Notes: a model not told the origin generated them from the letters alone. A DNA stretch of 64,000 nt from Salpingoeca rosetta (GCA_033442325.1 JAWQFM010000004.1:1170693-1234692); one strand, 5' to 3'; shown: positions 45,290 through 50,913, numbered from the stretch's first letter. Made by a program: numbers and translations.

Positions 45290-45673
45290 CTTCGTTGTAG
45301 AAAATCAACCGCCACACCCACCACTATTCTGGCGCCAAGGTTTGAATTGCGCGTTGGTGACCAGTGGGTTGTTTATTGTGTGCGCGGGCGCAACCTCCTC
45401 CTCCTCCTCCTCCTCCTCCATCACCACCACCTCCTCTCTCCCTCTCTCTCTCTTCTCTCTCTCTTCTCTCTCTCTGCTCTCTCTCTTCTCTCACTCTGTC
45501 TCCTGGGGGCCTAATTGATCAGCGTAACAACAACGTCATTGACACAAATCACACCACGCACAAACGCACACAAAAACAATCAAACACACCACACATTTGA
45601 AACACACGACACACACGAAACACACGACACAAACAACACAAGCGACACAAGCGACAGACGACCACCACGGCGC

Positions 45674-47006
45674 CTATGCGTCTGCTCTGTGCTCGTCCAG
45701 GAGGCGGAGCGCCACGTCCAGGCCAACCTTGAGGTCTTGCTCCAACTGCGTCAGCTCGGCGTCACTGAACCGCCGATTCAACACCTGCCGCTTCCACACT
45801 GCAAACGCCGCGTTCGCCTTTGGCCGGCACTCCGTCAGCAGCCGTCGCACAAGTGGTTTGGCTGCGTTGGGCCGCAGCGCAAGCGCATGGTGCACGGGCA
45901 TGCGCTTTGCCCGCACCTGTTTCTTCTCGCCCGTCACGGCCACGGCCACGCTGCACACGTCCCGCAGCTGCGCCTGGTCCGCCTCGCTCATGTGCTCCGC
46001 AATCGACGGCTCCCGGTCAATAAACCGCAGGTCCCGCTGCAGCGTGCTCTTGAACGTCTCATATGCGCGCGTGAGCAGCACCACCCCTGGCGCGCGGTCG
46101 CCAAAGCGCAGCAGGCCAAACAGCGCCGCCTCAAACGACAGCACGTAGGCGAGATACGGCCCCTGCGGCTCGCCCTTCAGCAGCGACGACGCAAACACGT
46201 GCAGGTCCTGCTCCCGTGTTGTTCGCGGCCGCGCGCGGTACGGCGGGTCCTTGTTTGGAAGGTGCAGCAGCTTCGTCGCGTCCAGGCACACGTGGTACAT
46301 GTACTGGGTGCACATGTGGTTGAGGATGAGCTGCTGCTGGAGCGACTCGAGTTCCCCCAGCAGCGAGGGCAGGTCCAGGCGTGCATCCGCGTGCTCGCCA
46401 CCGCCACCACCCTCCTCCCCGTCCAGATCCTCCAGCGTCACGGCCATCGCCGCCCGGAACGTCACCTCCCACGATGTGAGCGAGGCCGACCGCGGCGTGA
46501 GCAGGTCAAACGCAGACGCGTGCGCGCCGAGTGCAGCAACAGCGGCGGGCCGGAACCGGGCATGTGCACGCACGCGCTTGCGGGTGAGAATCTCATACAC
46601 GAGGAGAGAGAAGGCATAAGCCTGCGCCTGTGAGCTGGCGTTGTCTGGTTTGGCGTCGCACTCTGGCGGCAAGTAGAGCAAGCGGTCGCTTGATGTCTCG
46701 CGCGTCACGCCAGACAGGCGCCGGCTAAAGTCTGCACAGTGTGAACAGAGGATGGAGATGGAGTCGCGGGGGTTGAGACGCGGGAGAGGGGGGTTGTGAG
46801 AACGAGCATGGCGAAGCAGTAACAGGATGACACTGCAAAAGGAAAGGCGTGTGTGTGTGGCTGACGGGCAAGCAGGGAGGCCAACAGGCAGCCGTAAACG
46901 CTCAAAGACCAGACGGGACAGACACAATTACGTTCAAACACACACATGACGCGCGCACACACACACACACATGACGCACACACACATGACGTACGCATGC
47001 ACACAT

Positions 47007-47043
<37 letters not shown>

Positions 47044-49085
47044 ACGCACCGAAATCGAAGAGCATCCCCTTGAGCTTGTTGCCTGAGGAGGGCATGAAGC
47101 GAATGTGCTTGTGGTAAATGCACGGCAGGCGCATTGCCTTGTCCTCACACCACTGCAGCGCCTGGCCCACATCAAGCATCGCCGTGTACAGCTGCTCCTG
47201 GGCCGTGGTGGCGTTGGTGAGCGCGTCGCGGAACGGCGTGTACGACGGCACGGCCGCAATGTATGCAAAGCGGCCCGCCACCCGGTCCACAAAGTAGTAG
47301 CGCGCCACGCGCCGGTGCCTGTTGGCGACGAGCAGGTCAAGGTCCTTCAGGGCGCGCTTGGCAACGCGCGACGTCAGGTTTGGGCTGATGGGGCACTCCA
47401 CCAGCACGACCAGGGCGTGCTTGGCAAGTGCAATGCTCCCATCCGCCTTCTCCTGCCTCCATGACCCCCTGAACACACGCGCAAACCGCTCGTCTGCCAG
47501 GTTTGGCTGCGCCGTGGTCTCGTCCACCTCGTAAGCAATCCCCCCACCCGCCGCACTGCTGCTGCCGCCAGTCCTCTTCGCCGCTCCTGCGCTTAACGAC
47601 GACGACGACGACGACGACAATGACGACGCAGCACCGGCCAGCTTGGCGCGCTTGGCAGGCTGCTCGTCGGAGCCCGACACAAGGAGGTGGTCCTCCAGGG
47701 ACTGCTTGTCCTCAGGCACATCATCGCACGGGTTGCCCGATTTCTCAAGCAGCGGGCTGCCTTCCTGGAAACAGTACCACTTGCCAGACTGCACAGTTTG
47801 CACGTACTCACGCGGCAGGCACCGCCACTTGTTGCACGAGTCGCACTGAATCCAGTCGACGACCTCGTGCTCTGACAGCTCGCTGTGCGATATCTTCTTG
47901 TACGCCCTGGTCTCGCGGGCCTGGTCATACTCCACAAACACGTCGTGCAGCCGCAGCAGCAGCCGCTGGTACATGTGGTTGTTGTGGAACTCCTGCTTGT
48001 TGTCGTGCGGCACAAAGTGCTTCTTGGGCAGCTCTGCCAGCAGGATCACGCCAAGGCCCTGGTGCGGCGACGTGATGTGGGCCGCCTGTCGCAGAAACGA
48101 GCAGATGAGGCAGTTGGCCGAGTACAGCATGATGCCACCGAGCTTCTTGCGCTTGTACATCTCCGAGAACCCGATGCTGATGCGAATAACGTCTTCATCG
48201 TCGTCCTTAACGGCGAGCGGTTTCATGTCGTCCACTTCTTCCTCCTTCTTCACCAGCGCCTTTGCAGCGTCCGCCCCATAGTCTTCTTCGTCTTCTTCTT
48301 CTTCCTTCTTGGGCCTCGCCTTCAGGATGGGCTTCATCTTCACATCCGTGCGCCCCTCCTCCTCCTCCTCCTCCTCCTCCTCCTCCTCCTCCTCCTCCTC
48401 TTTCTTCATCTTCATCTTCATCTTGGGGTTCGGTTCCTCCTTGACTTCAGACTTCACTCCCCTCTTCACCCTATCCAACATCCCCTCATCATCCTCCTCT
48501 TCCTTCAACTCCTCCTCCTCCTCCTTGATCTCCTTCTTCACAATCGCGCCACCACCACTGCCCCCGCTGCCGTTGGCTGCGCCCGGTCTGCGCTTTGGCT
48601 TGAGCGCCTTCACCTTGAGTTCGCTCACCTGCACATCAGACAGGTCCTGCTCCAAACTCCGCCGCTCCACCAGCTTATCGTGCAGAAACACGCGCAGGTC
48701 AATGCCGTGCGGGTGCTGGCGGGAGGGCGGGCGCGTCTGCAGTGTGCGGTACATGATGGCCACGTATTTGCGCAGGGAGTAGTCCATCTCAATGTCGTCT
48801 GCCAGCACACCGTCCTTCACTTTGCGCTGGTAGTGCTGCCGGTTCCCGTCGAGGTCCTCCTGCCAGATGCGGAAGTCGTCCGGCACACTCGTCATGTCGA
48901 GCTCGGGCCTGCAGCGGGGGATGGGTGCGCATGGATGAGAGGGAGAGAGAGAGAGAGCTTGTGCGTGTGTGTGTGTGTGTGTCTGTGCGTGTCTGTGTGT
49001 GTCTGTGTGTGTGTGTGTGTGTGTGCGTGTGTCTGTGCGTGTGTCTGTGTGTGTGTCTGTATGTGTGTGTCTGTATGTGTGTGTC

Positions 49086-49117
<32 letters not shown>

Positions 49118-50913
49118 GTGAAGCTCGACACAGGTGAAGTACACGTGTACAACATTTGCCCCGCCCCCCTTTTTCCTGCCTCAAGAAAACTGACTGCATG
49201 TAACCGTAGGAGTCTTCCTTCTTGACGAGGTCGCTGATGAGGATGGTGGTGCCGCTGGTCTGGTTCTCGTGCATCCAGCGCCCCACAAACAGCTGGTTGA
49301 TCACCTTCGTTCGCTCCATGATGCGCTGCAGTACAGAGTCAAACTCCTGCTGGTTCTCTGCTCCCAGAACCCAGAGGGGAGGAAGCAAACATGACATATG
49401 GAGGTGAGTAGGTCGTGATGGTGGTGATAATGATGATGATGAGGCGGGATCATGACAGAGCACAGACACAATACTGCATTGCATTTGATTCCTACACCCA
49501 CGCGTTCTCGCGCACACGCACACGCAGACACGCACGCACACACACACACGCACACACACACACACCTGCAGACACACACACACACGCAGAGACACACACC
49601 TGCGTCGGCGTGTCCGCCTGACCCGATGTTGAGCTTGGTTGTTTCGCACATGATGTCGTCTTCGCCAGTGGGGCCGCGACGAGAGAGAACACCAATACAG
49701 ACGCTGTTGTGCTGTATGGAGCGGGTCAGCACGACAGCGTGGTGTCCAATGCGCATGGAGCCCGTCTTGAAGCCATACCCGAACCGCCCACTGCGATGGG
49801 TGTCGCTCACGTCCTGCAGGCACAGGGGCACAAGCACATGTGACCCGTGAGGTTCGTTGGAGAGGAGAGAGGAAGAGAAGATTGGGCACGCCAATCGCAG
49901 TGGCACGCGAACGCACACTCGAGCGCACACAAAACAACCCGCAAACAAAATGCATGCACAAACACAAATACACACACGCACACATACACACGCACGCACG
50001 CACGCCGCTCACACGCACACGCACACGCACACGCACACGCACACGCACACGCACACGCACACGCACACGCACACGCACACGCACACGCACACGCACACGC
50101 ACACGCACACGCACACGCACACGCACACGCACACGCACACGCACACGCACAAGCACATACCTGTTTGCGGCCCAGCTGCATCATGGTATCAATCTCTTCC
50201 TTTGACATGCCCACGCCGTCATCCCTGAGCTCAATGAGCGTCTCGCCGCCCATGGTCTTTGGCCGGATGCGGACATTGCGCGCATCTGCGTCGCTCGAGT
50301 TGTGAATCAGCTCTGCAAAGGCGCCAAAGATCCACTCGTGTCGCGCGTAGGCTTCCTTGAGCAGGAACGTGGGTGGCAGCGAGAGGCGGCCCTGCACGTG
50401 CAGGCCCTTTGGGCTGTCGACTGGGGTGCTGGTTGGCGTTGACGATGTGGAGGAGCTTGTGCGCTGCCGGTGGTGGCGGTCGTGGAGTTTGAGTCGCAGG
50501 TGGCTGGTGTCTGCGCGTTGCAGTGGGGCGCCGTCGCGGTAGTAGATGCGGAAGCGGCCCATTTGCTTCGGCGTGGCCACAAAGTATATGCTCGGGTTCT
50601 GTGTGTCTGACAGGATTTCACCCGCCTTTTCGTTCCCCCTGTGATTGAGGCACTTCCACAGCCTGAGCACCTTTCCTTGGCGATCCTCGTCCTCAAAGGA
50701 CACGTCCAGCGGCTGCGTGCCTTCGAGGGCCTGGCTGACTGTGTGAATGCGAGGAGAAACGCCACCGCCCGCGCGCTTCACCTTCAGCAGGAGCACGCCC
50801 TGTGTTGGCCAACCAGGCGGCAGGATGCTTCGGTCCATCTTGCACTCGCTGATGAAGGCTGGCCCGGTGGGTTCGTCTTGAAACAGCTTGAAGGTGATGG
50901 TGTCCCCGCTCAT
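45674..50913 (-). CDS. MORC-family GHKL ATPase with S5 and CW Zn finger, fused to a C-terminal pseudokinase and a helical domain, multi-exon
   Basis: [84 protein letters not shown]; kinase-like subdomains at about 47500-46340. Inferred exons: 50913-50161, 49814-~49600, ~49360-49197, 48909-47050, 46731-45674. Confidence 0.9.
50011..50150 (+). repeat. (CACGCA)n hexamer microsatellite in MORC intron 1
   Basis: Tandem CACGCA run seen directly. Confidence 0.9.

Follow-up and report, generated by a model that had tools for sequence, protein, structure and literature searches.

The window analysed here is a stretch of 64,000 nucleotides (nt) of the Salpingoeca rosetta genome (GCA_033442325.1 JAWQFM010000004.1:1170693-1234692), and all positions are counted from its first letter. 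On its minus strand, positions 50913 to 45674 hold the gene for a MORC protein with a kinase-derived tail: the GHKL ATPase, the S5 domain and a CW-type zinc finger are followed by a kinase fold and by a further conserved domain. The protein is a member of a MORC-kinase family for which no description was found in the literature searched.

The gene has five exons with a spliced length of 4047 nt, and the spliced translation gives 1348 amino acids (aa) and one terminal stop. The coding region (45674-50913) begins with an ATG at 50913 and ends with a TAG at 45676-45674, all introns are of the GT..AG type and the junctions agree with the orthologues and with RNA. Exon 1 (50161-50913, aa 1-251) encodes an N-terminal domain, a linker and the first GHKL motifs, the latter in a stretch of 15 residues. 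Exon 2 (49600-49813, aa 252-323) carries the GHKL motif GRFGYGFK and corresponds to positions 68-99 of the HATPase_c_3 profile; across its junction the protein is continuous with P0001, an orthologue from the choanoflagellate Microstomoeca roanoka. Exon 3 (49195-49357, aa 323-377) contains the end of the GHKL module and is followed by the donor GTCAGT at 49194. Exon 4 (47050-48908, aa 377-997) encodes S5, the CW finger, a linker and the kinase N-lobe through the residues DF, while exon 5 (45674-46731) encodes the rest of the pseudokinase and a C-terminal domain. The two are separated by intron 4 (46732-47049), which splits the codon of Asp997 and contains a (GT)n microsatellite. All four junctions show gap-free continuity with a cDNA-derived orthologue and with an intronless environmental orthologue, and the start codon aligns with the start of P0001. 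The CW finger and the kinase-like stretch share one uninterrupted open reading frame (ORF, 46934-49144), and the tail of the gene is single-copy in the 55.4-Mb genome. Much of the intron sequence consists of (GT)n, (GTGC)n and (CA)n microsatellites (50010-50151 in intron 1, 48960-49140 and 46980-47045).

RNA was mapped over positions 45600-48950, and direct RNA evidence for exons 1-3 is limited to the junction between exons 3 and 4. In each of two studies an RNA contig (X4 record 1, X5 record 8) extends from 48275 to 47050, continues gap-free at 46731 and goes on past 45600. Both contigs show the exact join of 47050 with 46731, so that one RNA carries the CW finger (47854-47720) together with the kinase N-lobe and the tail. 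The intron that the original prediction had proposed at 47049-46732 is therefore spliced out exactly, and the single transcript past the CW exon, for which a check had been suggested, is present. In two RNA runs, the stranded raw reads over exons 4 and 5 all fall on one strand, with a depth of zero at 46832-46943. At the junction of exons 3 and 4 (49195/48908) the contigs stop at 48908, and the loose end of eight raw reads at this position (X17) is the end of exon 3. In exon 4 the contigs cover 47050-48275 and 48436/48481-48908; they are broken at a GAG-rich acidic repeat (48276-48435), which is why no single listed contig covers the whole gene. No cap or polyA sites were seen between 47700 and 47500 in the mapped RNA. 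The locus is one expressed gene. A depth spike with apparent 'variants' at 46944-47055 falls in the intron-4 microsatellite, where the variants are mimicked at 46972-46976, and we read this pile-up as reads from other loci.

Pfam was run on the separate exon translations, and the scores of the MORC domains are above the curated cut-offs. HATPase_c_3 matches exon 1 with an E-value of 9.5e-11 (aa 196-250) and has a further match on exon 2, and the ATP-binding motifs ExxxN, DxGxG and GxxGxG can all be read in the sequence. Morc6_S5 (4.1e-14) matches in two stretches, the best at aa 601-704, as the S5 domain (47924-48778, aa 421-705) is split by an acidic, Glu/Lys-rich low-complexity insert (48239-48628, aa 471-600) which is mostly missing from the orthologues and in which the RNA contigs break. 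The CW finger (47720-47854, aa 729-773) scores 4.8e-9 with zf-CW, and the tryptophans of WIQC and KWR are W729 and W738. The GHKL module, the S5 domain and the intact CW finger with both cage tryptophans are thus found as predicted. Using the orthologue P0001, whose finger aligns to the CW finger of MORC3, the closest structures to the MORC module are those of MORC3 (1e-34), followed by MORC4 and MORC2.

The order GHKL-S5-CW is the same as in animal MORC3, MORC4 and MORC2, and the ATP-binding motifs and the CW tryptophans are present, whereas the motif ELIDN of MORC3 is ELIHN here, and an N-terminal domain of about 135 aa and the acidic insert in S5 have been added. The main difference lies after the CW finger. 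Characterised MORCs (MORC2/3 and plant MORCs) have a C-terminal coiled coil at this place which serves constitutive dimerisation, whereas the window protein has a pseudokinase and a helical domain. Between the CW finger and the pseudokinase a basic patch, PAKRAKL (47639-47659, aa 794-800), was read from the sequence; P0001 has KRSKL at the matching place, and the patch is a possible nuclear localisation signal. The window gene gives the sole Morc6_S5 match in a six-frame search of the 55.4-Mb genome, a count that is a lower bound. Three other HATPase_c_3 matches in the same genome (C3:54499-54852, C11:451903-452259 and C1:2436780-2436905) could be MutL-type proteins.

An exhaustive HMMER search with exon 5 identified P0001, a protein of 1180 aa with the same architecture, so that a search among other choanoflagellate proteins, as had been suggested, gives a positive answer. 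The spliced window tail aligns unbroken to P0001 711-1173 across the junction of exons 4 and 5 with 201 bits. A third orthologue, P0004, comes from an environmental sample of the Joint Genome Institute (JGI), and the same domain order in one ORF is found in the Microstomoeca transcript and in two environmental ORFs. The identity between the window protein and P0001 is 57% in GHKL, 57-60% in S5, 50% in the CW finger, 35% in the pseudokinase and 37% in the C-terminal domain. By these values the tail evolves faster, yet it is clearly under constraint. A search for homologous proteins using the tail of exon 4 gave nothing, a search with P0001 690-1180 returned only P0001 itself, and a metagenome scan with alignment A3 matched 139 stretches in which no relative was confirmed. 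One further candidate was discarded: P0002 (1987 aa, an nSTAND nucleoside triphosphatase with many ankyrin repeats) has a match to exon 5 (1e-10) that is made up of eight short stretches, and this was taken as a repeat or composition artefact.

The original prediction let the protein end in the pseudokinase, which does not hold, as a conserved domain of about 210 aa follows the kinase fold (45677-46309, aa 1138-1348). This C-terminal domain is predicted to be helical and is kept in P0001, in P0004 and in a partial environmental protein, P0006/P0003. Neither Pfam nor the PDB nor the ESM Atlas gave a match to it. ESM Atlas rows with PF06479 gave the idea of a KEN nuclease, which was not supported: this family has no match on exon 5 (E<=1) or on four orthologous tails (E<=5); a genome-wide search for PF06479 gave no match either, and the controls of that genome search also found nothing. 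The N-terminal domain (50509-50913, aa 1-135) is 48% identical to that of Microstomoeca P0001. It has no meaningful Pfam match, and a profile comparison against the PDB gave one match at chance level, a DNA ligase with an E-value of 0.25.

Further relatives were found with the MORC half of P0001, for which only three proteins were retrieved at E<=1e-20, all three of them carrying a kinase. One is P0005, with Pkinase at 1.4e-19 as well as zf-CW, S5 and GHKL. A metagenome scan using the region of the signature ELxHNSSDA gave eight more loci with long intronless ORFs. Four of these were scanned with Pfam, and in each GHKL-S5 is followed by a kinase (Pkinase 1e-19 to 4e-35), with zf-CW present in three. 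The environmental MORC-CW-kinase set used in the following consists of P0005/P0008, L003-L008 and L010, where the L loci are those fished with the ELxHNSSDA signature. In this set the order of GHKL, S5, CW (none detected in L010) and kinase and the ELxHNSSDA signature are the same as in the window protein, and the kinases pass Pfam and align collinearly to the window tail (hhalign E 2.3e-5). The environmental proteins differ in being without the C-terminal and N-terminal domains of the window clade, and the N-terminal domain was not detected in the other MORC-kinase clades. Together with the orthologues in Microstomoeca roanoka and in two environmental sequences, this related kinase-positive set from environmental eukaryotes shows that the suggestion of a lineage-specific MORC was too narrow.

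The kinase of L010 keeps GSGRFAHV, VAIK, HKD, DFG and APE and matches Pfam PK_Tyr_Ser-Thr at 2.3e-36. From these retained motifs it looks active, and L010 is the only apparently active MORC-kinase among those found. The L010 ORF (L010:563-3337, contig Ga0105051_10050585) runs off the end of its contig. The kinases of the P0005 group have HGS/HGA and DHG/DQG, and look degenerate in a different way. The contigs of the environmental MORC-kinases are eukaryotic, intron-poor and syntenic with each other, with tetraspanin and HOOK genes as neighbours. In L004 and L008 the order is HhH-GPD glycosylase, pyridoxal phosphate (PLP) enzyme, tetraspanin (L004 only) and MORC-kinase, followed by HOOK in L004 or by a flavin adenine dinucleotide (FAD)-binding enzyme in L008; eukaryotic hosts with small genomes are indicated for these two loci by the conserved and intron-poor neighbourhood.

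The kinase fold of the window protein is divided by intron 4 into a first part (47050-47500, aa 847-997) with subdomains I-VII, placed by alignments to ULK3, by hhalign to Pfam-positive kinases and by a multiple alignment, and a second part (46310-46731, aa 997-1137) with the activation segment, PPE (aa 1018-1020), subdomain IX and subdomain XI with Arg1114, placed by the match to B-Raf, by the ESM Atlas, by profiles and again by the multiple alignment. The evidence for the fold increases with the number of sequences used. With window exon 5 alone the best PDB match is B-Raf at an E-value of only 0.056, in the part with APE and subdomain IX. When the window pieces are combined with P0001, the resulting profile matches 13 PDB sequences, all of them kinases, the best being ULK3 at 3.2e-6 from strand 2 through helix F. 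Adding P0004 to the profile gives ULK3 at 2.2e-10 and Aurora A at about 1e-7; this three-sequence profile matches 449 PDB sequences at E<=1, and the 60 listed among them are all kinases. ESM Atlas features of window exon 5 score 0.93 with kinase C-lobe clusters; for P0001 700-990 the score is 0.99, and the clusters matched are all of kinases. By hhalign, the kinases of the window clade match the Pfam-positive MORC-linked kinases with an E-value of 2.3e-5, and in the alignments subdomains I to XI are collinear and in canonical order from strand 1 (RFARVFRG) to Arg1114 of subdomain XI.

An AlphaFold model of P0001 700-1000, using an alignment of nine rows, has the expected order of strands and helices, with a predicted local distance difference test (pLDDT) score of 62-90 in the core. 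Foldseek finds at least 500 PDB matches for this model. Kinases make up all of the best 50 (E from 7.6e-7, template modelling (TM) score 0.45-0.6), with SIRK1 (7.6e-7), IRAK4 and RAF in the lead and Mps1, EphA2 and ULK3 also present. The signals for the kinase group are split: B-Raf is the best single-sequence match and Foldseek gives mostly TKL/TK kinases, and the best profile matches are ULK3 and Aurora A.

Several results weigh against the assignment of a kinase fold and against a common origin with the environmental kinases. The three Pfam models proposed for the MORC module were found, but no kinase model matches the window exon translations at E<=1. No single sequence of the window clade passes the Pfam kinase threshold, P0004 reaching 29.6 bits against a cut-off of 31.7. 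The window protein and its clade are missed by a hidden Markov model (HMM) built on the Pfam-positive MORC kinases, and hhalign against P0005 alone is weak (E 0.036, probability 1.4%). An earlier AlphaFold run, covering the whole tail with an alignment of 4 rows, gave a pLDDT of 37, and the nine-row alignment of the later model included true kinases, the modelled sequence being the orthologue P0001 and not the window protein; for these reasons the modelled fold is consistent with a kinase but is not independent evidence. The comparison bearing on common origin covered the kinase-bearing MORCs. No kinase was matched in a PDB search with the window N-lobe piece alone.

On the alignments and profiles described, the tail is a protein-kinase-fold domain. 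The frame continues from the CW finger into this fold in one transcript, and the kinase motifs quoted in the original prediction are all present and on the expected subdomains in the alignments to ULK3 and to the Pfam-positive kinases. The region 47500-46340, which had been named as the critical one, scores as a kinase with profiles and with the ESM Atlas, and the orthologue model is consistent with this. The window and environmental fusions are likely to be of common origin, which is likely rather than proven because hhalign aligns the clades (E 2.3e-5) and the plain HMM misses the window protein.

The residues of the active site were assigned using the ULK3 alignments and the multiple alignment with Pfam-positive kinases. 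The Gly-rich loop GxGxxG is missing, the window domain having ADERFA where the active-looking relative L010 has GSGRFA. The position of the VAIK Lys is occupied by Glu881 of LVECP, by which the charge is reversed; a Glu is found here in all three orthologues, and the model of P0001 puts the corresponding IIIE on strand 3. The helix C Glu is Asp899. HRD is replaced by Leu971-Pro972-Cys973 and the catalytic Asn by His978, so that this region reads LPC..H in the window, VPC..H in P0001 and VPV..T in P0004, the HRD Asp being lost in all three. DFG is Asp995-Phe996-Asp997, the last codon being the one split by intron 4; it is DFD in the window, DFE in P0001 and CFE in P0004, where the Asp has also been lost. 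The APE motif is Pro-Pro-Glu1020 and the subdomain XI Arg is Arg1114. By these assignments the domain lacks the catalytic residues and is a pseudokinase. ATP binding would be unlikely owing to the acidic residue on strand 3 and the acidic residue in the former Gly loop. The changes of HRD to LPC and of DFG to DFD had been predicted correctly; likewise the Gly loop, the VAIK Lys, the HRD Asp and the DFG Gly are gone as proposed, except that the Lys position is the Glu of LVECP and not in HALVVL.

We consider it probable that the gene encodes an expressed MORC3-like ATPase carrying a pseudokinase and a helical domain, in which the kinase stems from an older fusion and now acts as a protein-protein module. 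With its intact ATPase motifs and CW finger, the protein is probably still an ATP-driven DNA or chromatin clamp reading histone tails. The source of its kinase module would be an ancestral MORC-CW-kinase fusion, of which kinase-recognisable versions, one apparently active, may survive in other eukaryotes. In the ancestral form, nucleotide-driven dimerisation of two MORC heads could have paired two kinase domains, and the pairing may have activated the kinase as in kinases that are activated by dimerisation. In the choanoflagellate clade phosphotransfer would then have been lost, with the ATP-anchoring Lys changed to Glu, the catalytic Asp to Cys, and an acidic residue where the Gly loop had been. 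The pseudokinase may have been kept as a protein-protein module, i.e. a dimerisation, regulatory or effector-docking platform acting with the C-terminal domain, and the two could stand where other MORCs have their coiled-coil tail.

KSR, HER3 and RNase L are pseudokinases that serve as scaffolds or dimerisation modules. By analogy, the window domain would resemble them as a conserved kinase fold without catalytic residues that is fused to other domains, whereas there is no specific sequence relation and the partner module is here a GHKL chromatin ATPase. In RNase L and IRE1, too, a helical domain stands directly after the kinase fold, but the helical domain of the window protein shows no match to the KEN nuclease family PF06479.

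The assignment of a pseudokinase raises the question of whether the domain could still be an enzyme, either as an atypical kinase with displaced residues or with other chemistry. WNK kinases have a displaced catalytic lysine, and SelO has a kinase fold doing AMPylation; in a comparable enzyme Cys973 and His978 would be the candidate residues. The DFG Asp (Asp995), an acidic residue in helix C (Asp899) and the APE Glu (Glu1020) are retained, the Cys at the HRD Asp position and the His at the Asn position are common to the window and Microstomoeca, and both proteins have a Lys a few residues upstream of strand 3 (IALAK and TLKD). However, P0004 has Val and Thr at the positions of the Cys and the His and has lost the DFG Asp (CFE); the clade as a whole shares no other set of catalytic residues. 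As the Gly loop is also gone and all three orthologues have an acidic residue instead of the ATP-anchoring Lys, we regard retained catalysis as improbable. A second explanation, that the tail is a decaying kinase relic without function and under neutral drift, would account for the loss of catalytic residues and for the pseudokinase being the least conserved of the ordered parts (35% against 57% in GHKL). It is contradicted by a reading frame that stays open for 500 aa in four sequences, each of another organism, by the collinear alignment with conserved hydrophobic core motifs and by transcription of the tail at a level equal to that of the rest of the gene; moreover, the conserved domain downstream would vanish if the tail decayed. 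This makes neutral decay very improbable.

The breaks of the contigs at 48276-48435, which leave the whole gene without a listed contig of its own, could be taken to mean that a MORC gene and a separate, neighbouring kinase-like gene have been wrongly joined in the gene model. Against such an artefact, no intron or frame break separates the CW finger from the kinase N-lobe, each of the two studies has one RNA contig passing from 48275 through the splice to beyond 45600, and the same domain order is found in one ORF in the Microstomoeca transcript and in the two environmental ORFs; the chance of a wrong join appears negligible. The expressed MORC3-like protein with a pseudokinase used as a protein-protein module is hence the reading we retain.

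A broader proposal can be made, which we consider unlikely, though less so than the explanations just discussed. In PKR, IRE1 and RNase L, a ligand drives the dimerisation that turns the protein on. Similarly, the proteins described here might form an ancient, unrecognised eukaryotic MORC-kinase signalling family in which ATP- and DNA-driven dimerisation of the heads switches on a C-terminal kinase, the pseudokinase clade being coupled through its C-terminal domain to a non-kinase effector; choanoflagellates might thereby sense transposons or viruses at the chromatin and act against them. Copia elements are present elsewhere in the window, but no result of this analysis connects the gene with them.

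No description of a MORC-kinase fusion was found in full-text literature searches (MORC with pseudokinase, choanoflagellate, zf-CW with kinase). A survey of MORC architectures from 2008 (PMC2292703) contains no such fusion, nor does a 2026 preprint on related GHL ATPases contain a MORC-kinase fusion. The earlier statement that no characterised MORC-kinase fusion is known is in accordance with the literature searched, this survey included. The environmental MORC-kinases do exist as automatic annotation, e.g. under the name 'serine/threonine protein kinase'.

In animals, plants and apicomplexans, MORC proteins act as silencers of transposons and genes, and the link between their ATPase clamp and the events that follow is still debated. 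Where nature has fused this clamp to a kinase fold, the coupling can be approached directly; some environmental eukaryotes have the fusion with an apparently active kinase, and choanoflagellates have it with a dead one. With this locus, the pseudokinases that are missed by single-sequence Pfam searches gain another well-supported member. If the source choanoflagellate can be cultured and is genetically tractable, the roles of the pseudokinase and of the C-terminal domain would be accessible by truncation.

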